From Kudoa neothunni (Eukaryota; Animalia; Cnidaria), in NCBI GenBank assembly GCA_964304625.1, contig OZ199839.1:8852221-8916220 (forward strand): a stretch of DNA of 64,000 nucleotides, given 5' to 3'. The notes beneath the pieces are model-generated. The model worked only from the letters and a program-made list of their open reading frames with translations. It searched no databases and had not been told where the DNA came from. The position numbers were made by a program, and so were the translations under genes. Of this stretch, positions 6,999 through 28,500 are shown piece after piece (positions within the stretch are counted from its first letter, which is position 1; each line of letters begins with the position of its first letter).

Positions 6999-9900
6999 CA
7001 GTCGATACTGGATATTGCGTGGTTTTTTGCTGTTCCCCCAAAATCCACGCAATACAAAGTTTTTACGCAATATCCAGTTTCATGCGTATGTGTTACATTG
7101 TAAAATACGATTTTTCTTGTGCTTACGTTTGATGATTATTCCTACCAACAAGTTTTTGTTAAAACGCAGATAAAATTGAATTCAATTAAGAGAAACTTAC
7201 TAATTTTTTTCAAAAATCTTGTGATTTTTGCGTGTCAAATCTTCCTATTGATATTTTTTAAATTCTTTCCGTTATGGGATATAATTCAAACAATCCAGAT
7301 AGAGCTTCTTGAATTAAAACTTTATTTAAAATATTAACTATATTCAATTTTTGTTTTATAAAAATTTTAACTTCTTTAATAATTAGTTCGATATCATCAG
7401 ATTAACCATTTGGGGGAAATAAATCCGCATGATTTTGATACTCACATGTTGCCACCTTATCATCGTCAAATATATTTTCGTAAGCTTCAATTTCATTGGA
7501 GAAAACCAATAATATATACATATTATATTACTTTCATAATTGTTTCTGATTTGGGACATCATCCTCAAATCTTCTTGTTCTATAAACTGATATAACTTTT
7601 TTATTTTACAGTTTTATATATTAGTATCAAGAATTTTTGATGTTTAAAACAATTAAATATAATTTCTGGCGTAATACTCTCCTAAAATTTAGTTAATGAC
7701 GTGATTGAGTTTAGTAATGTTTATTTTTAAATCATAGAAACTTCACATAAAACCGTGTGCTTCGTCATTGTATTCCTGTCCTATTTTTAATGCATTTAAT
7801 GATGCCTAAATTAAGCTTTGCGGAATATTAGTCGTTTTTGAGTTGACAAATTTGATATATTTTTAAAAAATCAATATTTTGGGGATGAAGAGCATATTGA
7901 ACAAACAAAATTAAAACTTTTCTGTTCTCATCTACCATTCTTTGGTTCAACTTTCTATTATGTTAATAAATATATTACGCATCGTCCATGTGTTTTTTTA
8001 ATAATATTCACGCGGTAGATGTTAAACCTAGTTCAAACGCCAAGGATTCTGAAATTTACCGGTGAAAACTGATGGGAGTTTATTCCTATTTAAAGAAGAG
8101 TGGCAGTAAAACAGTCACTCTTTTTTGGATATTTTTCCCTAATATTCCCACCTGATTCCTTTAAAACATAACCAATGTTTTGGTAACTACTCATAAAAGA
8201 AGGCCAGCAGTTACATCAATGTTTATAACGTCTTTAGGACTATACGCCTTGGCCTAATTGATGTGCTCAACATTCCATGAGTCAGCAGAGGAAAAATATG
8301 TGGTCGCATTCTCATCACGAAGCATTTTGAAAGCTATCTCACATCTTGGATGGACTCTAAAGACCACATTCAACTAGATTTTAAGTTGGGAATTTCTTTT
8401 TTATTTGTAACTAGCGTTAAAGCCCAGCATCGCTTGACACTATGTGACGTAAAATTTTAATTTTTCTGTTTTAATTGATGCATTTCAAAGCTTTTCATTA
8501 TTTTTGCAATGTGATGAATTAGAAAAACAAAATTATGCGCACACTTTCCATTCGAATATAAATAGAGGTATTGAGAGAAATTAATGAATATTTTTAAGTT
8601 TATTTTACAAATTATTGGCCAAAACTATGATGACCTTAATTTTATGAGCAATTAAAGTTCATTTATTAAACAAAATAATAAAGTAACTTAAATAGGACTT
8701 TCAGTTCTTTTCAAAATTTTGCGATAAAAAATTAATCATTCTAGTTATAAAATTTATTATTAGTCTACAAACGATAAAAAAATTAAAATAGACCTAAAAT
8801 GCGTCAAGAAAAAAATATTGTTACTCCTTTTTTTGCAATTTTATAAAGGATGTTAATGAGGTTTCAATAATCTGTGAGTAGTGGCTTAAGTATTCGTTAT
8901 TTTTAACATATTTTTCCAATTTTTAAATAAATGCAAACTTTCTTTTTATCAAGAATACTTACTAGTTCAAAAATATACAAATTTAATTAACAAAATACGA
9001 TTAGATTTAAAATGTAAAGATGTTTTTAGTTTGGAAAATTACAGTAATACTTAAATATCAACTGGTTTTCTCGGAGAAGCGCACCCTTTTAAAAATAAAA
9101 GTACTGTTTGATTTCCCTAAAAAATTACTTTGTATTGAACTTTTCTTGGATTAACGAAAACTTTGTGTAAATATCGGTTAGATCGAATAGACCAATAACT
9201 TCTTATCAACTTATATAATACGTATTGAGATTGAGATTGAGGGGGACTATATTTTGTGCAAAAGTAATCGTGAATATAAATTCTTAAATTACGTGTAGAA
9301 TGCGGTGTCGCGTATTTTCATGAAGCTTTTATTTCATAATGAATTATTTGTAGCAAAAAGGAAATTATATATGATTTGAATACTAATCTTAAAGTCTGGC
9401 TGGAGGTAAGGAATAATTAGGTTACTAAGAGCCTAAACATTATTTTAAAAAAATTATATCATAAAATATAGAAACTTATCGAATAATTGATGCCTGCTGT
9501 TCTGCAAGAAATTTTAGGACAACCAAAAAATGAGTAAAAACTTATCGAAAAGACGAATATAGTTTAAATCTCAGTCGGTATATTCGATAAAAAAAAATCT
9601 TCATTTAAGAAGTTATCACAGAAATTTAATTATTTGAAAACTCTACACACATCCTACATCGTCATTAGAATTCTTATAGAACTACCAAATTATTCCTTGA
9701 TGGAAAAAACTTTAATCTCGAATTATGTGTTTTATTTAAAATGGTCATAAGTCTTTTTGCTTTAAAATGTATCTATAATGCTTGAAAAATTAAAATACAT
9801 CCTAAGTACTTTGTTATGCTTCAAATTTTAAGGGAAATGCGACAACTCTTGTAAATGTGACGTTAATGATTTTATTTGTCTTATATATGTCGTTTGGAAT

Positions 9901-10821
9901 AATTTTAACATTGTTAAACCATTCTATACCATAATTAACAGATTCTCTTTGTGAATAATGAGTAAAAGTTTATTCTAGTCGATTTTTTCTTTGAAATAAA
10001 CAAACATCAATATTATTATTGTTATTATGCAGGTACTTTTAAATCTGGTAATTGATGTAAACAAACAGAAAATTCCTTCCTTCTGATAACGATATTGATT
10101 ATATTTATACTTCTAAGTAAATGAACGATTTCTATTGATGGCATCATCTATTCAAATGCAGACTAAAAGCTGTATTTAAAAAAGTTTCGTCTTGACACGT
10201 GAATATTGCTACAAACACACACACTGACAGACAGAAGAACTTTATTTATATAGTAAATATATAAAGCAATTTCGATAAGAGCATATCTCGGCTGAACATT
10301 ATCATTCGACCATTGTTTAACAAACCAACCATATAACTTACCATCTATATTTTTAATTTGCCAGAAAAAATGTTCTTCTCTATAGTTTCAATATTCGTAT
10401 TTTTTGAATTTATCTTCGTGTGAATGAATTCTATCAATCTCTAGATGATCTTTAACATGGAAATATATTAATATTCAACTTAGATCACTACATCACTCAA
10501 TTTAAACTTAGAAATTATCATTTTTAAGACAATTTTCAACATTTTAATCGAGTTATAATAATCAATAATTTCTCCTTTCTCTGATCTATTACTTTTTTAG
10601 AGGATTTAATGAAGAATACACTCTTAGTTTTACATAAATCGTCCATAAAAACCACGCAATACAAATTGTCCACGCAATAACTAGACTTAAGTTATATCTA
10701 AAAAAATTGTTTTTTTATGTTAACTATGTTTACAGAATGATAAAATAATAACAGAACCAAAAAGCTAGGTTCCTCTCTAAAAAGAATAATGTCAAAATTA
10801 CGCAATATCCAATCTCGACTG
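6999..10821 (-). mobile_element. Tigger/pogo-like DNA transposon with TIRs, TA TSD and decayed transposase
   Basis: TA|CAGTCGATACTGGATATTGCGT at 6997 and ACGCAATATCCAATCTCGACTG|TA at ~10800-10823 are imperfect TIRs. Subterminal CCACGCAATA repeats occur at both ends. Minus-strand remnant at ~7950-8400 (YSPKDVINID.TA, SKKRVTVLL, TGKFQNP) resembles TIGD/pogo DDE. Confidence 0.8.
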
Positions 10822-12710
10822 TATTTGGAGAGTCCCCTAAAGTTTGCCTCACAAAACTCTCTTAATTATCCAAACCACGCCGAATCCTATTTTCTAAGAT
10901 GTTTTAATAAGTATGAAATTAATAATTAATTAAAATAATTCATTTATAAAAATGTTGCATTTAGATCTTGAAATATTGTATTGTCTATTTAGGCAGTGTC
11001 CATTGTAACGGATGGGAATATCTACCAAAATAATGCTTCCATCAATCTTTTAATTTTAAAAATACAAGTAACAATTCATGAACTATTATTATGTGAATTT
11101 TCAACGGAAAATAAATTCCTTGATTTTTTTTATCTTTAAATTGGCCAAATGTGCGATCATTGTTTAATTCTTTTCTTCAACAAATTCATATATACGTTAA
11201 TGTATAAGTAATTTTCAAATACTATGTGTTGATTTCATGACAAGAAGTATCGACATATACGATACATTAATTAAGAACACGTGAGCTTCTGTTAATGAAG
11301 TTTGTTTGAAACAAAGATTGTAAATTAACTATCTTACGATATAATTTCAATTAAAATAATTAAGTTTACATTTATTTGGTGGTTATAGTTTGTATAATAG
11401 GCTTTATCGATAGAGATCACCCTTGATTCTTTCAGCATTAATGTCCATCATGTGAAACTTTACTATTTGATTTACTTGAATAAAGATATTTTCTATCAGT
11501 GAATGTATATTGAATAATTTCCAATCTAATAATAGTGCTAAATTTAATCGCAATGCGAAATTACAAGAAATCGCCAAAGAAAAATTTAAACCCTATTCAA
11601 ATCGCTTATAAAATGCACAAGTCTCTACAAACCGACCTATGTCAACGTCTGCAGCATAAAGCAATGGATTTATCCTTATTTCAATAGTTGTTATTGAGAG
11701 AATTAAAATTATATTAGAGAAAATAATGTTTATAACTAGAAAACTATTAAACATAGTTATAAAATATTCATTTAAAACGTGGTAACTAACTTAGAGCACA
11801 AAATGAAATCAACGAGAATAATTCGAAACTGATAATCAAGTATCAATTAACGAGCAAAATGAAAATAGAAATGATATAAGTATAATATGTTCAAATAAGT
11901 ATTAGATATGATACTTGAAGCAAATGAAAAGTCAAATGAAGGAAATTTCTAAAGCATCCTCAACCAGGTTACTTACTAATGGCTCGTCTTTAGACTTCTA
12001 TAAGATGAAAGTGACAAACAGACAGATGAGTGCAAAATCGACGATAATTTTAATAGTTAAATAATCATATCGAATTTTCTATTAATTTTATGTCGATTTT
12101 AAAATTTCTCTCTAAAGTAAGAACAACAGGCGACTTACGGGTACTGATCTAACAGTCATTAGATTACCTCGAAGCCGAAGACGTGGAATTTTAAAATTAA
12201 CATATTATTGTACAAACCAACAATATCATATTTTATAAAATATATATCAACCATATAAAGTAGTGTATGGACCATACGCAATTTTTAAAAATTTCCTTGT
12301 TTATTACTTTTTTTTAATTCAAATTGAAATAGATCATTTGTCAATAGGTAATTGGTTTTCAAAAAAATATAAAACCCAGCTTAACGCGAAACAAAACTTT
12401 CATTCCTGGTCTTTGATAACACCATCTGACTGCTAATATTTGTATATAGTTACGTTAATTAAAGTAAATAATGCAGAGCGAGAAAAACTAAAATTTATTC
12501 ATCAGAAACAAAAAAGGAGCCAATCTACATATCTATTATCAAAACTCGAATATCATTTCATTTATGTTAATCCTCATTTAGGTAATAAAATTGGATATTT
12601 CATTAGTTACAGCAATAGATATTATTGGCGAATGAGTGCAAAGAAAAATAACTCATCATGAAATAAAGACAAACAAGCCAATATGACTAAGAAGGTATTA
12701 CAACAAAACG

Positions 12711-13258
12711 TTAGGTGTACTCGCTGGCATCAATCATCATTCTGCTTGTGTAAAAATCTTGAAAGAGATCTCTGAGGGTTGCTTGGATACTGGGAGTGAC
12801 TGCTTCTTGTCCTAACAATTGAGTAGCTATCGAAATCAACGACTTGTCCATTTGCTACAATCCGGATGTATAACAAGATCACCCAATTACAACATACGTT
12901 GTAGATATCCGGTGGAATGCCCATATCAGCCAAATTCTTGTTTACCTCATCTATAATTTCTTTACGTTGGGTGAAATCAGTCCATGCATACACCACCTTT
13001 ATAACTTGCAAAATAACGTATACGGTTTTGTTTTCGATTTCACACAAATAGTGGCCAATGTAAGACCTGAGATGGGGCTGTTCTTTTAGCATACTGAACG
13101 CGCAAATAGATCACAAAAATAAGTTTACAAATGTGGCTAACTTACTCCTTATAAATTTCGTACACAAAGTCCATATTTGCCTTGGTGGCGTGATGAACAA
13201 TTTTGTTCAAAAAATTTTTCAATTCACGGGCAGCCTCAACACAAGAACCCCTCGTCAT
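12711..13258 (-). CDS. Globin-fold protein lacking proximal and distal His (globin B, 150 aa, 3 exons)
   Basis: Exons 13258-13146, 13093-12898, 12854-12711 total 453 nt, open, with GT-AG introns of 52 and 43 nt. Protein: MTRGSCVEAARELKNFLNKIVHHATKANMDFVYEIYKD MLKEQPHLRSYIGHYLCEIENKTVYVILQVIKVVYAWTDFTQRKEIIDEVNKNLADMGIPPDIYN QMDKSLISIATQLLGQEAVTPSIQATLRDLFQDFYTSRMMIDASEYT. Introns fall at globin positions B12.2 and G7.0. ProC2, FG-corner G-I-P and GH LG.E.VTP patterns are present. Confidence 0.85.
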
Positions 13259-14242
13259 TTTTTATATAGTTCAAGTAATCCTATTAGAAATCCTATTATT
13301 TTCTTTTTTTATCGATTTTTGTAAACAATTATAAATAGCAGGATTTACAAAATTTTGTTTGGGATTAAGACAAACTGAATAAATAAAATGAAAGCAATGC
13401 CCAAAATTAGTACCCATTTAATGCGATTAAATTGGCAGAACTCATTTCGAAATCAATAATATTTTTTGAAATATTTAAATTATTAAATCCCCATTTCTAT
13501 TCATTGAATTAACATTAAATTCAATGATTTTTTTATCTTAGTAATTTTTTGCGCCATCAACACTAATATAAAGTATTCGCTTGTTTCCTTATATGGAAAC
13601 TATTGATTACTCCATTATTGGTTTCTTTAGAATTAAATAGACGAAACTTTACGTTAAATTAATAATCTTTTTATTATAAATTTCTTTTATATTATATTTG
13701 TTATTTGATGCTAATCAACAATTTATATGCGTACAAAGGAATCCCTGAGAAAATGAGAACATTTAGATATGTTATTGATCGCTTGTTCCATTTTAATCCT
13801 TTGAACCCCAATGTCACCCCAGATGGTAATTTTCAATTCTGTGAGTGTTTTAACCATTTGGGTACATTTTTGAATCTATCTTTACTATAATAATATAGTT
13901 AATGTTAACTTGATTTTATATAGTTGAATTAGAAAAATTTGTGTGTTTTATACCAAAGCAATACAGATACAGATGAATATCTAACTTTACGGCAAGTATA
14001 AAAAAGACTAAAAGTATCCTGCAATTGAACTTGGGATCTTGAGGTTTCAGTAAAATTAAAAAATATACACATATAATATTAAATAATCCTGTTCTAAAAA
14101 TGAATCTAAGAAGAAGATATGTTTTGATATGTATACCATAGGGACAGATTAATCCATGTTGCCATTTAGCACCATGTGTGTATCTTTTTAATTTTTGAAA
14201 TTACTGCTCCAATTTTTGGATATTTTATACAAAATTATTTAA

Positions 14243-16653
14243 CTCTCTAACCGACTTGGGGTGTATTACACCCCGAAGCACTTTTATTCTGACCATAAAA
14301 TCTCGCGCGTTTTTTTTCAAATATTTTAAAATTTAGGCTATTCTCCTAAATTTGTGAATTCTAGCATTTACTAAAATTTAACGAAAAAAAACTAATTGGA
14401 TCACCCCCTAAAAAAATCCATCTTCTAACCAACTTGGGGTAAATATCACCCCAGACTTTTTTCTTAAATTTACTTTAAAAATTATTTTAATTTGAAATGC
14501 AAATTATTGAAAAATTCTATCGCAAGAATTTTGAGAAAAATAGAAATTACCACAACAAGTAATCCACTTCTGCTTATTTCGATAGCAATGTGCATTCCCT
14601 GCGAAAATCATGATGGATATAACTCGACTTTCTGCAGGTATAATATCCTTGTTTTTTTATTAAACAAATTGTAGGTCAATAATATTTATGATTAATTGTT
14701 TATTGATTTTGACTAAATGTCAATGTGATAATTCAATTCTGATTATAAATATGCCTCAAAATAATAGAGAGGGCTTACTCGAATAACACTTAGTACACAA
14801 ACAAGTTCCTGCAGATAAATTACAATGAGTAATCTTGATGAGTTTTTTAATTAAAATCTATCTTCTGAGAGTGAATTGGATGACTACTTGTTAGAACTAT
14901 CGAACTATTCTGACGAAATTTCAGAGAATGAGCTTTCTTACAATGCTACAACAAGCAAAAACGGAATTCTTTGGACAGTAAAGAAACCTACTTCATCGAG
15001 GACATCCATGGAGAATGCTATGAATTCCCATCCTGGCCCAACCGCATGCATACGCTACACAACGAGTCACAAATATTTTGGATTGCTTTGTTACATTTTT
15101 CACAACCCAAATTTGTGAAGAGATAACAAAATTTACAAATATATTTGGGAAACCAGATTTGTTGACTCATGGATTGATCCGGATGAAATAGAACTTAAAG
15201 GATTCCTAGGAATCCTAATATTAATGGCCATTCATAATGATAGAGAGGAGCCACTAACTGAACTTTTCAGTTTAACTGAAGGGAAGCCTATCTATCGGCA
15301 ACTCTTCACGTATCACCGATTTCAACAAATATTAAGATGTCTTCATCTTGATGACATGGCCACTATAGAACAACGGAGAGAAAACGATAAATTTTGTCCG
15401 ATTCGCAATGTATAGAACATGTGGATACAAATATTGCCGATGTGTTTTACTCCTAATGAAAATGTTACTGTTGATGAGCAGTTAGTATCTTTTAGAGAAA
15501 GGTGTCCATTTAGGCAGTATATACCGTTGAAACTAGCGAAATGCGGGTTGAAACTTTTCCTTCTTGTCGATCCTTTGGATAATTATATCGTAAGTATTTC
15601 TCCATACCTTGGAAAAAACGGAGGTGAAACTGGCCGAAGCTATAATGTTGAAGAAAGTATTGCCTTGTCTTGGCACCGTCGGTCCCTTTGTTCCATTCCG
15701 GAAGAACGATTGTGGCGGAAAATTTTTTTCATCCTTAAAGTTAGCGACCAAGTTATTAGAGAGACAGTTAACGTATCTGGAGACCATTCGACAAAGCAAA
15801 AGAGAATTACCATCAAGTGTTAATCCCTCCAAACACAGAGAGTTGTATAGGACCACCTTCGCATTTTTCAAAAAAATATGTTAACAAAAAAAGGAAATGT
15901 GTGGTTCCTTTGTTGACTGAGACTATTAAAACGAACATTTCTAGTGAATGTGAAAAGAAAAAGACCCAAACAATATTGTGGTACAACAAAACAAGAGGGG
16001 GAGAGGACACTGTTGACAGAATGTTGTCGTCTATCTCTGTAAGACGATTTAACAGGAGATGGCCCATGGTTGTATTTTTCAATATGGTCGGCTTATCATT
16101 AATAAATGCTTTTGCGTTATATAGAAACATATATAATGAAAAAGCGAAAATAAGGCGCACTTTTTTGAAGGAAATGGCCAAGACCCTGTACCAGCCGCTG
16201 ATGAACGGAAACATGAAAATAAATAAAGTCATCAAAAGATCTTCATCATCTATCCAAAATTCAAGTAACTTATCGTCAAAAATAAAACATGGACGTCGCG
16301 TGTTTTTGCCACGCCAAAATGACAAAAAAAACGTCCAATAAATGTTCGAATTGTAGTTAATTCTACTGCAAATTTTATTCTTCGAATAAATGTACAGATT
16401 GTGCTTAAGTTAAATCCTCATTTTTTATTAGTTTCTCAAAGTTTATTTCGTATCAAAAATATCGTTTGGTGGTTGTTTGATAGTAGTGTTTTAGTTTAAT
16501 CGAGTGCGATTACTTAATACAGTAATCTGAGTTTTCTCAAATTTCTTTCAATAGAATTATTTAAAAATTTCCAAATCAAATTAAAATAATTTTTAAAGGA
16601 AACTTAAGCAAAAAAGTCTGGGGTGATACTTGCCCAAAGTTGGTTGGAAGATA
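14243..16653 (+). mobile_element. piggyBac (PGBD4-like) transposon, frameshifted transposase
   Basis: TTAA|CTCTCTAACCGACTTGGGGT left end. The internal repeat 14420-14462 is the inverted complement of 16611-16653. Transposase fragments RFQQILRCLHLDD, VTVDEQLVSFRERCPFRQYIPLK, YNKTRGGEDTVD, RRWPMVVFFNM lie over ~14750-16410 with stops and frameshifts. Confidence 0.92.
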
Positions 16654-17013
16654 GTACTCTCCCGTAGCTTAGAGAATAAGTGCGCTCACCCAAAATATAG
16701 AATAACACGCGCGGTCCCGACTGGGTCCAATAAAATAGTAATAAGGGGGCTTTTAGCGTGACGGATAGGCCGCCAATAATAATCAGGTTGCGACTAATAC
16801 CTAACACTACTCAAACCTAATTTAATCTTGGCACACCAAATAATGGTGAATGGTAAGTGAGTGATTGCGAGCTCAGAATCAAAAAGACACTCGGCCAGCA
16901 TTATTGAGAATAGACGAAATAGACAGCGGCAGTAGCTCACTGTCCCAAAATTGTTAGATAAGCGAAATAAGGAGAAGCGAAAAGTGGACGATAACCCTTA
17001 GCAAAGAGAATGA

Positions 17014-17596
17014 TCATTCAACATTTTTCCATCCTTCTCTGAAAGCAGCGAACAGTTTGGAGAGGGCACTATCTATCTCTGGAGTTATATATCCTTCACC
17101 AGCTTCTCTTTTGATGAGACCAACAAGAGATAATTTGAATTGCTAAATAACGAGAATATAACGCATAGATTAGCAACAGTAGCAAAATAAAGTTAAACAA
17201 TACATCATATTCCTCTTCAGTGATTTTGATGCCAGTGTGTTGAACATTTCCTTCGGTGATGGCTATGTCTAAGCTGGCACCATCTTCAGAGCTATCGACT
17301 ACCTTCAAAGCACAGCCAAAATATTATCAGTGTGTGACTTGGTTTCTTCTCAGATTTGTAGTTGAAATGCTTTTGAAGATTGGGTTTTTGCTTCAACATA
17401 CTAAATAGGAAAGAGCAAGATGATGCGATGAGCAAGCAGTAGAACAACAGTAGATAGAGAATTGAATAAAACCAGTTAGTTACTCTGTGAACACCTCGTA
17501 ACCAATGTCAACATTCTTCTTACCACACAAGTCCTTCACTTCGCCAAAGACTCTTTTGACAAGTTGAGCAGTAGCAGGATCCAATTTAGAAATCAT
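17014..17596 (-). CDS. Globin with PheCD1/HisE7/HisF8 (globin A, 3 exons); two 1-nt deletions in exon 2
   Basis: Exons 17596-17484, 17400-17204, 17142-17014; introns (83 and 61 nt) at B12.2 and G7.0. Restoring 1 nt at ~17351 and 1 nt at ~17308 gives MISKLDPATAQLVKRVFGEVKDLCGKKNVDIGYEVFTD MLKQKPNLQKHFNYKSEEETKSHTDNILAVLLKVVDSSEDGASLDIAITEGNVQHTGIKITEEEYD QFKLSLVGLIKREAGEGYITPEIDSALSKLFAAFREGWKNVE. Confidence 0.85.
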
Positions 17597-19985
17597 CGTC
17601 AATTCTGTGCTTATTTAGATTTCCGATTACTTATGACAACAACAGAAATTATCTTTCGGTCTCTTATCAGTCCCCAATACTCATTATTTTAATGCTGTGT
17701 GGAGTCATGTCGGAACAATAAATTTGAGTTTTTAAACAATCCTAACTTTCCTATACAGTCTATCTATTAAAGCGAAGCTAATATTTTAATGGAAGCAACG
17801 TTAATTTTCACCGATTTCATGAAACGATATCCAATTATCTAATCTACATAATAATGATAAGGAGAATTTCAACTCGGTATGCCTTACAAATACATTCACC
17901 TATGGATTCAAACGGAAAATATTATATTAACTATCTATTTATATGAACCATAAACAATATAAAAACAATTATTCGCAATATTTACAATATTTAGGTTTCA
18001 AGTCATGTGCTGACCGTGACTTATGTCTTATCATCACAAAACCTACTATCCACTTGTTGTTGCTGCGAATAATCCTAATCAGGGAACGTTTTCAACCTTA
18101 AAATCCTACATATTTTAAAAAGTCGTGTTGGTATGTGTGGTTTTTTTCAAGTACGTCCGTAAGAAAATAATGCCGTCCTTATAGAAGCATCTCCTTTATG
18201 TATAGCCGCATTATCTAACCTATATTTGTCAAATCCGAATATTAAAACGCTAGTAAATATTGCATCACTCTATCTATAGATAATATTATGACGCAAGATT
18301 GTTGACATAACTGAAAATCAGATTATGTGATATTTTAATTGCTGTCCTTGGATATAAAATCTATTTCAAACTACTAAAAATTGAACTAAATTACTTCTGT
18401 CGGAAAATACTTACAACAATATCAATTTATTAATCCATATTCGGCTGATGGAATTCAGCTAAAAAGGAAATAATAATATTATCAGAGAAAGGACTATCAA
18501 CGTCATTGAAATCCCTATAGTTCGTTGCTATTTTAGAAGCAACGAACTATGCAATACCATTAAGTTTTTTGTTCAAACCATTTATATAATAATTATTAAT
18601 CATTTAAAGTCATTCTCTACATTAAATACAGTCGGGAGTATAGTTTCTAAAAAGCGTTGTGCGTGATATTCGTTATATTTAAAACACGAATCAATTAAAA
18701 CAACCATGCTAAAATTGTGGTCTAGAGTTTCAACTATAAAACCTTAATCCGATGTACTCTTAAACTCAAAAATTAACACAATTACTCTATAATTTTCTTA
18801 AATTAAATCAATTAAATTTTAATTAATTAATATTGCATTAAAAGGCGATGGTTGCATTTCATTCGTACCATTCTTCGTAAAAACGTCTATTTTCTATAAA
18901 TAACGCGGTCGTTTATCAGCCTACTTCTATATTTTAGCTTTTATTGTTTCCAAATTAGGTGAAACTGGTGGAAAAGCGTGATACGTGATGCATTTCACGA
19001 TCATCGCGCTATATCACTCCCGTGACCTGGCACGCGTAGAACCCCTAGGAGGGACTTTATGCCCGACCTATTGTTACTCAACAAAATTTTCGATATAAAC
19101 TAACCCAACTTTAACATACTACGAATGGATAAACATTTTTGTATTATTTAGAATAGTGAAATAATAACTTTAATTTTATATAAGGATAAGATTGATAACG
19201 GCTTTTCTCAAGTAACCAGTTAATACCTTTTAATGGGGTTTCCTTCCTAATCAGATTATCTGAAACCGAAACTATGTGATTACATGCCGGGAATCTAGAT
19301 ATTAGTAAGTAGCTGGATCCTGTTACTTTAGTTACAATATTTATATTCGAACCTAGCTTTGTGCTATGCTTGTTTTACTTTTTATTGTCCGAACATCATT
19401 TACTACATCGCTTATTCTCGCTAGATTTTAATGTTCGCTGAATCTGTTCGAATAACAAAACACAGCCCAAAACTCATATTACATAATTTTTTGAGGTGTA
19501 GAAAAACATATAGGGGAGAATTAACCAGTACATAACTGGTTGCGTGGGCGTTTGTGTTAAAGTTTAGATTGTGGGTGAACAAACCGGAGGCCTAATCCGA
19601 CCCTCAATTAGAAAATTTGTATTTCATGATAAATATTAAATAATTCAACATTAATGTTGTTCTTTAATTTTATATTATAGTTATCTACAGAAATTAATTT
19701 TCTGACTCCTGAGAGTTTTCTAATTTCGAAATCCCCCCCCCCCAAACAAAAATTGTTTATATGCCGCTGAATTAGATGATTGAAATATTGTTATGTTTAT
19801 TTATGTTAAAATAATCGATTGTTAGTTGTTAGTTTTATTTTGGCTTATTTTTGAAAGTTCTTCATATAGCAGAGTCTCCCCATAGAGGTCCGTGACTTAT
19901 ACTTTTAGTCCAAGAAAAAAATTTTGGAGTCGAGGATGCTTCATACTTAATGTGACGATTCTGAGTAAGCGGAATCTCCGTCGAG

Positions 19986-24594: not shown

Positions 24595-25583
24595 CTCAAT
24601 GAAGCTCGCTAAAATCGGTGACTAATCTTCTATTTGATACAGTCCCCAACAAAAGTCTAATTAAAAGTTCGAACCATTTGGTCAATACCATATCATTCTA
24701 GACACCCATTCTAACAATATATATATTGTATACTCGAAAAATATGTACACACATATATGAAGTATTCGTACCAAGGTGAAAAGTTATGAACTATATGCAT
24801 ATTGATAACATTTAAGTCTATTATTTTTAGCATGTTTTTGTATGTCAATCGCACAGATAGTGTCAGTGGAAAAAGATATATACGCATTATTTTATCTTAA
24901 ATATATGTTCAGATCATTATATATAGCACAATTCATATTAAACATATTTCTCGAAATTTTGCCATGAGCCAATTTTCGAAATAACCTCTTTAAATAAATT
25001 CAGGATATTAAATGTAAAATAAGCGATAATTAATGATTTCTACCGAATCGAAACTTCTAAAAGATCTGCCACGCGAATAATTCAATGATAATTAACCTAT
25101 AAATAATAAAAATATTTTTTACTGCGATTATTTATATATATGTTGAATGCCTTTCTCAATTAATTGGTCAGATTAGCGGGCAGAACCCCCTCCTGAATTA
25201 CAAACTATTATCCTTGTTTTGGTAACATGTGGTATGATTTAAAAAATTTTTAATTTCAATAAAAATTATGTAATCGAAAAATCTCTCTTATATGACAAAT
25301 TATTCAGGAAATAACCCAAAAATAATCCTTCGTAAAACATCGAACATAACACTGATTTTGAAAAATTTTATTTAATGACTAAAAAAATTTCAAATCACAT
25401 ACAAAAAATTGAATAAATGCATATATTAGTATATAATGAGCAATAGAATGGCGTATCGTAATAGAATTGAGAACTAATGAAATCCGAACATTCCCGAAGA
25501 ATAATCATCCACTAACTAACGTTGGTAGTGTATAAAGGTGCCCTTGTGGTTAGGTCGTTCTTTTGTTATCTAATACATTTGAT

Positions 25584-28500
25584 ATGGCCGAGGAAAAAGC
25601 ACCAATTAAAAAGAAGAATCCAAAAGCCTTCACTTACAGATCAGCACTGCGAGCAAAGAAGGGGCACGCTCGTCGTTTGGACCTTAAAACTCTAAAACAT
25701 CATTTACCTACAGTTAGCAAGTGGGTTATATGAATTTGAAAATAGATATATAAAAAATAATTTTTTTATTATCTAGGGAACAAGAACTACCTCCTCCGAT
25801 GGTTGTTGGAATAGTGGGACCTCCAAAGAGCGGTAAATCTACATTGTTGGCGTCTCTCATCCGACATTACACCAAATCACCAGTCTCTCAGATAAATGGT
25901 CCTATCACAGTGGTGACTGGAAAAAGAAGGCGCCTCACATTTATCGAGTGTAACAACGATATCAATTCGATGGTTGACCTATCGAAGGTGGTGGATTTGG
26001 CATTGTTGGTTATCAGCGCGAAAGACGGTCTACAAATGGAAATATTCGAGTTCTTGTCGATGATACAGGTGGCGGGGTTTCCAAAGGTGATGGGAGTGTT
26101 GACATTTTTGGACCGGTTCAACGAGAACAAATCACTTAAAGTATACAAGAAAAAGATCAAAGATCGCTTCTGGAGTGATGTGTATGCGGGGGCGAAAGTA
26201 TTCTACCTGACCGGTTTTAAGTATTCGTCGTACGGCAAAAGAGAAATAATTAATTTGGCTCGTTTTATTTCACTTGCCAAACCACCTCAGCTCTCATGGA
26301 GAACCTCACATGCCTATCTGATTTGTGATCGTATGGAAGATATAACCGATCCTGAAAAGATCCGTCAATCGAATAACAACTGCGATCGTACCGTGGCCAT
26401 ATACGGTTACGTTCAAGGGACACATTTGAAATCTTCACAAAAAATCCATGTGATGGGAGTTGGTGATTATTCGATTGCGAAAATTGGATATCTACCAGAT
26501 CCATGTCCATTTCCTGATCACACCAAAAATCGTCGACTCGACGTTAAAGAGAAATTGGTGTATGCACCATTCTCCAGCATCAACAACATTCTTTTCGATC
26601 AAGACGCAGTTTATATTGATGTTGGTCAAAGTCAAATGTTTCAAAAGCGTGACTCATCCACAACTGCCAATGACAACGATACAGCACTAGCTGACAACAA
26701 ATACATTAGTGCGATTCTCGATATGAAATATTCGTTGAAAGACAAATTGAAGGCATCCACGTTTGCACTTACAAACGATGTGCTTTTTGAAGATGAGAAC
26801 ACAAGCGACGAGGATGACAACTCACAGCTCGTAGAAACTCAATCTGAAGAAGAATCGGCTGATAATAATCGATCGCAGGTGTCACTGCCATCAATCATTG
26901 ATTCCAAGCGTATACGAGCAACTCATCAATCTCTTACCCTCCATCTCCCACATGTGGTACTGAAACAGTTGATTTACGGTAAACAACAAGATGATCAAGT
27001 AGTGGTGGGAGTAAGCAAGCATGAGAAATTGGTGGGTGACTTGTTTTTTGAGAAAACCAAATCTCCCAAATTTGACAACAGTATCTATGATTGTACAAGA
27101 ACTTCTAACAAATATGACCCACACGCACTAGCTGTTGATCAGCTAATTTCAAGTAAAGTCGATTGGATCAACACTCCCAAACAATTGATCTACAAATATT
27201 TTGTTACTGGTCAATCTGAGAATCTGGAGCGAAATCTTAATAATCTCTCCAACGCTGGTCTATCTACCTCAGTAGGAACGATTGATGGGGATGACGATGT
27301 CGATGTATTCGGAGATTTTGAGGATTTGGAAGAAATGGAAGATTCGGAGCAAGATCCACAATCTTCATCTGAAGAACAAATGTCAAGTGATGATGATGAT
27401 GAGATGATGATGAAAAAGAAACTGGAAAAGAAACAATTATTCGATAGTGCTTACGATTCCAAACAACTTTCCACATCATCGAAATCTAAAACAAAATCTG
27501 ATATAAATGGTGTTATTAAAACTAACGATGAGAAATATACTGAGGAAGAAGAGCGCTATTTGAATGAGTTGAAAAAGGCCGCGTTGGAACAAAAGAATGT
27601 ATAATCTGTTTAATTATAGTAGAATTAGTTGGTTCTTAAATTATCATTTAAAGATGGATGACAACGAATTCAAGCATCTTCCTGAGGAGCAACGTGTGTT
27701 GTATGAGGGCTACCGCCCTGGCATGTATGTTCGTGTGGAAATTGTTGATATGGAGAATGAGTTTGTGACAAACTTCAATCCCAAATACCCGCTGATTATG
27801 GGTGCTATTCTGGCTGGGGAGGATCAGATGGGTTACTTGAATTGTCGAATTAAAAAACACAAATGGTATCGACGTGTGCTGAAAAACAACGATCCGGTGA
27901 TTGTTTCATTGGGCTGGAGACGATTTCAAACCATCGCCTCCTTCTCCATGGAAGATCATAACAAACGCAAACGATACATCAAATACACCCCCGCTCATCT
28001 GCATTGCTATGCAACATGTTATGGACCTTTGACAACGCCTGGTGTGGGTGTATTTGCACTGCAGGTTCCACCTTATGTTCGAAAGGTATTTGTTTTGAAG
28101 AGATTTAGCGTTGAACTGGTTTTAGCGTGAATTTCGAGTCACCGCCACTGGAGTTACAATAGAAGTCGATAAAAGTTTGTCAATTGTGAAAAAGTTGAAG
28201 CTTATCGGTACACCTTGTAAAATATTTAAAAATACCGCTTTTATTAAGGTATTATTTTTCGAGTTTATTTCTTAAAATACATTGGTGGCTTTTCAACATT
28301 AACTTAAAAGCAAGTTAGTTCCGATTGTAGTATTTTTGATAATTAGGCTGTTAATATTATATTTAAGTTAAAATAAATATTTTATAAAAATATACATTTT
28401 TTTAATTTTTAAGCAATATTTTTTGAAAAACGCAATTATAAAAGAAATTCTACAAAAGGATTTATAAAAAGGGTTGTTGGAATCATATTATTATGTTTGC

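Follow-up and report, generated by a model that had tools for sequence, protein, structure and literature searches.

The window analysed here, a stretch of 64,000 nucleotides (nt) of the myxozoan Kudoa neothunni (contig OZ199839.1 of assembly GCA_964304625.1, positions 8,852,221 to 8,916,220 of the forward strand), carries two globin genes, called A and B, which lie 3.8 kilobases (kb) apart on the minus strand and are separated by a piggyBac element (Table 1). The genome was assembled from HiFi data of yellowfin tuna muscle and comprises 40.2 Mb in three chromosomes (N50 12.0 Mb) plus a circular mitochondrial contig, with a G + C content of 30.4%, a median intron length of 49 nt and 5,316 predicted proteins (Weber et al. 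2025, PMC12239612). Repeats account for 46% of this genome.

Both globin genes have three exons and GT-AG introns. The first intron is in phase 2 and interrupts an Asp codon behind its second base (B12.2), the second intron is in phase 0 (G7.0), and both are in the same register as in eight other Kudoa globins; this comparison set consists of G1-G4 of the same genome and orthologues from Kudoa-like samples. B12.2 and G7.0 introns are the typical metazoan globin pattern, sea anemones included (PMC6077788). A preliminary description of this DNA had reported a same-strand pair with identical exon phases, equal first exons (113 nt from the ATG), a list of shared amino acid segments and a piggyBac between the genes, and all of these features were recovered. 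The gene models were searched exon by exon, and joined models were used only for local alignments and trees.

Table 1. Features of the globin locus (positions in the window)
Feature	Position	Strand	Remarks
Globin A, exon 1	17484..17596	-	113 nt, ATG at 17596; helices A-B; Gly B6, Phe B10; followed by 83-nt GT-AG intron, B12.2
Globin A, exon 2	17204..17400	-	helices C to G6; Phe CD1, His E7 (17334-17332), His F8 (17239-17237); followed by 61-nt GT-AG intron, G7.0
Globin A, exon 3	17014..17142	-	helices G-H; stop TGA 17016-17014; X4 read contig identical here
Globin B, exon 1	13146..13258	-	113 nt, ATG at 13258, in-frame stop two codons upstream; Val B6, Tyr B10; followed by 52-nt GT-AG intron, B12.2
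Globin B, exon 2	12898..13093	-	Ile CD1 (13059-13057), Lys E7 (13029-13027), Leu F8 (12933-12931); followed by 43-nt GT-AG intron, G7.0; X1 and X2 read contigs identical
Globin B, exon 3	12711..12854	-	helices G-H; stop TAA 12713-12711; BLASTP against A exon 3: 32% identity, E 5e-6
Decayed full-length piggyBac, 2.43 kb	14243..16675	+	TTAA 14239-14242 at left; right end degenerate; subterminal inverted repeats ~14420-14539 and ~16532-16652
High-copy repeat abutting the piggyBac TTAA	13800..14242 (approximate)		summed contig depth 130-225 versus 4-8 for single-copy DNA, roughly 30 times; loose contig ends at 14242

As assembled, gene A has a coding sequence of 439 nt that stops in exon 2, with the distal His out of frame. 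The read contigs X1, X2 and X4, which represent three runs of one sample and not independent individuals, each contain an additional T behind position 17349 and an additional A behind 17306, and with both bases restored gene A is open over 146 amino acids. The His/His globin of the preliminary description thus exists in the reads, but not in the text of the window, where the frameshift had been missed. A single extra T as the cause of this frameshift was ruled out by the reads, which show two missing bases. Over ~1.5 kb around A, contigs and assembly differ by 4-5 gaps and 0-1 substitutions. Since the read contigs restore two single bases, gaps far outnumber substitutions and both losses shorten a base run, the frame breaks look like assembly errors, with the signature of long-read errors rather than of a second allele. 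An annotation based on the assembly would wrongly list gene A among the pseudogenes. For gene B (150 amino acids) the read contigs agree with the assembly base for base, and therefore its His-less state is real. Positions 16386-17899 of the window show a local surplus of small indel differences between assembly and read contigs (X1: 5 gaps, 1 substitution), despite the published quality value (QV) of 48.5 (PMC12239612), and further apparent pseudogenes of this assembly may likewise be errors.

The introns fix the register of the heme pocket: counting from E7, F8 comes 32 residues later and the G7.0 intron a further 12. In this register read-corrected A has Gly B6, Phe B10, Phe CD1 (F50), His E7 (H61) and His F8 (H93), and with its B12.2/G7.0 introns, Phe CD1, His F8 and distal His E7 it agrees in these respects with animal 3/3 globins. 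B has instead Val B6, Ile CD1 (Ile50), Lys E7 (Lys60) and Leu F8 (Leu92, codon TTG), so that none of the residues expected of a heme globin (proximal His F8, Phe CD1, His or Gln E7) is present. His F8 and Phe CD1 are found in all eight other Kudoa globins, Leu and Ile at these positions in B alone. The claim of a His-less paralogue was thereby upheld, Leu F8 and Lys E7 being confirmed by the read contigs. A is most likely a soluble globin of the cytoplasm that binds heme, whereas B, having lost the proximal His, the distal His and the CD1 Phe, lacks the normal means of ligating heme iron. An offset of three residues between A/B and G1-G4 in helices E-F of the MAFFT alignment was dismissed as artefactual, since the numbers of residues from His to His and from His to the intron are identical.

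Judged from its sequence B is nevertheless a globin by descent, because it scores above shuffled sequences, keeps a hydrophobic core, shares the intron positions and is a paralogue of A. A hidden Markov model built from the other eight globins, without A or B, gave 31.4 bits for A and 23.9 bits for B (shuffle maxima 7.2 and 12.7), and hydrophobic residues occupy 29 of the 35 core columns in B (P 1e-5). The pocket of B retains FG Ile and G5 Tyr. Exon profiles of the Kudoa set matched mostly globins in PDB, though weakly (cytoglobin E 0.005; leghemoglobin E 0.01).

A and B are 27% identical (read-corrected A, intron-anchored alignment), while either of them shares 10-19% with the other Kudoa globins. 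The score of their local protein alignment, calculated with a provisional A model, was 131 compared to a maximum of 63 in 2000 shuffles. In three trees of the Kudoa globins, all unrooted and with long branches, A and B together form one side of a branch with supports of 98/98, 97/97 and 93/90, in agreement with the grouping as paralogues that the preliminary description had named as a check. Approximately unbiased (AU) topology tests rejected B with G3 (p-AU 0.03) and A with G2 (p-AU 0.02), but not B with G4 (p-AU 0.10). A and B are therefore likely to be sister paralogues within the Kudoa globin set, short of proof because the tree is unrooted and the branches are long. The distance between them amounts to 2.4-3.0 changes per site compared to 0.35-1.2 between orthologues of different Kudoa-like species (two to eight times), and the duplication thus probably predates the split of those species. 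No similarity is left between A and B at the DNA level, upstream DNA included. The proposed duplication with subsequent functional split is supported by these data, as A and B are mutually the closest Kudoa globins and B is intact without the heme-ligand residues.

Including A and B, at least six globins are encoded by K. neothunni. G1-G3 form a tandem trio of His-F8 globins (C1:1992770-1996700, minus strand), the order of which is kept on another Kudoa-like contig (L039). G1 carries His E7 in K. neothunni but Val E7 in both orthologues (L038, L039). In G4 (C1 ~1471650-1472480, plus strand), which has both His E7 and His F8, position B6 is Pro and the N terminus is extended by a basic stretch; our searches gave no orthologue of it. 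G1-G4 have the two introns and the fold pattern in common with A and B and all carry His F8, but are only 11-19% identical to A/B, mostly basic and longer in the CD region. A and B have in common a short CD region and acidic isoelectric points (pI 5.2 and 5.5), in contrast to the neutral to basic values of the other Kudoa globins (pI 7.1-9.6). A large protein profile search returned orthologues of two trio members, G1 and G2, from other Kudoa-like samples and besides these only two very long multi-stretch proteins (727 and 2367 amino acids), which we take as unrelated. Word searches with exon 2 of B and of G4 gave no match, and no globins of free-living cnidarians were returned by the searches.

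Several features of gene B suggest that it was not left to decay. At F8 the codon is TTG, which has no position in common with CAY, and the codons for E7 (AAA) and CD1 (ATT) each differ at two positions from those of A. In a simulation of neutral evolution, which considered the frame only and ignored indels and splice sites, the B frame stayed open in 9% of runs at 0.1 and in <1% at 0.2 substitutions per site. The G + C content of the B coding sequence is 0.40, like that of other globin exons, while the flanks have 0.24-0.26. From the kept frame, the four intact splice sites and the hydrophobic core we infer selection after the loss of the heme ligand, and B seems to have been maintained long after this loss.

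The piggyBac element between the two genes bears terminal inverted repeats, and its transposase is broken by stops and frameshifts into pieces, three of which match Pfam DDE_Tnp_1_7 (E 2e-12 to 9e-6). It aligns near full length with three other copies (~85%), and no open frame exceeding 189 amino acids was found in the copies sampled. The element is dead, one of many copies and incidental to the globin pair. Since the copies are 82-91% alike in DNA, the insertion is far younger than the A/B duplication, and piggyBac as the cause of the duplication was ruled out on age.

Just downstream of B, at ~9100-11750 on the minus strand of the window, lies a multi-exon gene with a hydrophobic, signal-peptide-like start; four pieces of its likely frames gave no Pfam match, and a fifth matched COA8 weakly (E 0.045). 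On the plus strand, positions 25554-28260 encode the ribosome biogenesis GTPase BMS1, which was taken as an anchor for synteny. Its best matches (87% and 81%) are in a fish assembly and in a Logan contig, both resembling other Kudoa species. The former, JBCEDJ010000093.1 of Pempheris klunzingeri (GCA_042242105.1), is an AT-rich contig of 61.5 kb with the 87% BMS1 and its own decayed piggyBac; although annotated as fish, it probably stems from a Kudoa contamination that went unrecognised. Starting from BMS1, a synteny walk along this 61-kb contig revealed neither A nor B within 10 kb.

A and B resemble the neuroglobin-like and GbX-like single-domain globins of cnidarians in their three exons, the B12.2 and G7.0 introns and a length of ~150 amino acids, and A also in Phe CD1, His E7 and His F8 (Smith et al. 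2018, PMC6077788). They differ from these globins by the very short CD region, and B by the absence of all three pocket residues. The N-terminal MGC acylation motif of GbX-like globins is present neither in A (MIS start) nor in B (MTR start), and therefore both are not GbX-like by that mark; A may, however, have a further upstream exon. The E10.2 intron of GbX is also absent from exon 2 of both genes. This cnidarian survey makes no mention of myxozoans (PMC6077788), and no work on Kudoa or myxozoan globins was found in our literature search.

His-less globins have been described in arthropods. HbL2 of the ostracod Puriana has Met CD1, Val E7 and Val F8, Daphnia HbL has Tyr or Val at F8, and hexapod androglobin domains lack both His (Prothmann et al. 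2020, PMC7457136). For these proteins, which are known as sequences, an alternative function was proposed but left open (PMC7457136). Like B, they are animal globins with a replaced proximal His, in Puriana with all three key residues replaced. B differs in being cnidarian rather than bilaterian, in its own replacements (Ile/Lys/Leu), in the adjacent heme-competent sister and in a genome with only ~5,300 predicted proteins. His-less animal globins are hence already known as sequences, and B is a further case, in a myxozoan. The named families of non-heme globins are bacterial or algal and include the N-terminal domain of RsbR, the sporulation-inhibitor sensor domains of B. anthracis, phycocyanin and photoglobin, which have the globin fold without proximal and distal His (PMC8717448). 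In the RsbR family the pocket is reused for a fatty acid, which is held by a basic residue (PMC8717448). In contrast to the bacterial proteins, B is of animal heme-globin descent, as indicated by its introns and its paralogy with A, and has no fused signalling domain. Set against RsbR-type domains, B has no Pfam or PDB match to them, its F8 is Leu instead of the Arg of RsbR, and its basic residue is located at E7.

We propose that two soluble single-domain globins arose in the Kudoa lineage from an old tandem duplication. A would have kept its heme pocket and may serve in a cytoplasmic, neuroglobin-like role in nitric oxide or redox handling or in local O2 buffering. The source sample was tuna muscle (PMC12239612); that this is a low-oxygen host tissue was an assumption of the preliminary description. 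B would have lost the proximal His, the distal His and the CD1 Phe long ago and have been maintained under selection as a folded globin that works alone, in a role not involving heme. Its most likely ligand would be a small hydrophobic molecule, for example a fatty acid or a tetrapyrrole free of metal, that sits in the vacated pocket and is anchored by the polar residues Lys E7 and Tyr B10/E10, in the manner of bacterial RsbR-type globins. The piggyBac would have inserted later between A and B without a part in the function of the pair. To a folded, heme-independent globin B that acts alone and probably binds a small hydrophobic ligand, by analogy with these domains, we assign a probability of roughly 0.55.

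Several points weigh against this interpretation. None of the RNA runs looked through for the A/B locus contains the stretch; very few transcript reads mapped to the parasite in the published data (PMC12239612). No orthologues of A or B were found by word search, large profile search, synteny walk or exact look-ups of the exon open reading frames, although orthologues of G1-G3 were. B alone gave no globin family match in Pfam (single exons), PDB or Atlas, and single exons of A likewise had no globin match in Pfam, while G1-G4 do match PF00042. Folded alone, exon 2 of B was predicted as one long helix (predicted template modelling score, pTM, 0.42), which is uninformative. A itself has unusual residues (Gly F4, Asn E10, Ala/Leu where helix H usually has Trp) besides its pI of 5.2, and because of these its heme binding is predicted but short of certain. 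The ligand proposed for B, finally, is an analogy with RsbR-type domains.

The two proteins could also form a hetero-oligomer or a sensor/partner pair, as considered in the preliminary description, with B as a heme-less structural or regulatory subunit of A. They are encoded by adjacent sister paralogues on one strand, with a gap of <1 kb if the two later repeats are left out, and both stand apart from the other Kudoa globins by acidic charge and the short CD region. However, adjacency and like charge are expected from duplication alone, A and B have no shared upstream DNA, and tandem arrangement is common among the globins of this genome, as seen from the intact trio on C1. We consider such a partnership unlikely. 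Unlikely, too, is a B that binds or scavenges host heme through another ligand (Tyr B10/E10, Lys E7, the Met of the FG corner, a His or Cys of the CD loop) or without iron ligation, and that acts as a heme buffer in myoglobin-rich tuna muscle. F8 of B is Leu and not Tyr, Cys or Met, the heme-stacking CD1 Phe is gone, Gly B6 is changed to Val, and a signal peptide for reaching host heme is missing, even though the pocket is still hydrophobic, with FG Ile and G5 Tyr kept and candidate ligands nearby, and a Lys-His hexacoordinated globin has been reported (PMC4476040).

It appears quite improbable that B is a relaxed or recently dead duplicate with a frame yet unbroken. The longer branch of B (1.4-1.7 versus 0.9-1.2 for A), the lack of a B orthologue or B RNA in our searches and the fast evolution of myxozoan proteins (PMC12239612) would agree with relaxation, but the multi-step codon changes at F8, E7 and CD1 in combination with an open frame, four good splice sites, exon-like G + C content and a kept core are unlikely under neutrality, and the neighbouring piggyBac was broken in many places over a much shorter time. 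A genuine null allele as the source of the assembled A, belonging to a second haplotype, with the whole pair decaying, is very improbable: the published QV and haplotypic variation (PMC12239612) and the single sample behind all read contigs would allow for it, but the frame is open in 3/3 runs covering A exon 2, the differences around A follow the error-like pattern given above, and the initial scaffolds had a long-read k-mer coverage of no more than ~7x (PMC12239612).

For a myxozoan with only ~5,300 predicted proteins it is of note that at least six globins are retained. As B is a small soluble single-domain globin without the heme-ligand residues and lies beside its heme-competent sister A, the pair is open to direct expression and comparison. 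Our broadest suggestion is a tentative one, which we regard as less likely than not: B may be an animal globin kept by selection for a role independent of heme, either with a ligand of its own or as a regulator of A, and K. neothunni, with its highly reduced genome, would then provide an animal counterpart to the RsbR-type non-heme globins of bacteria.

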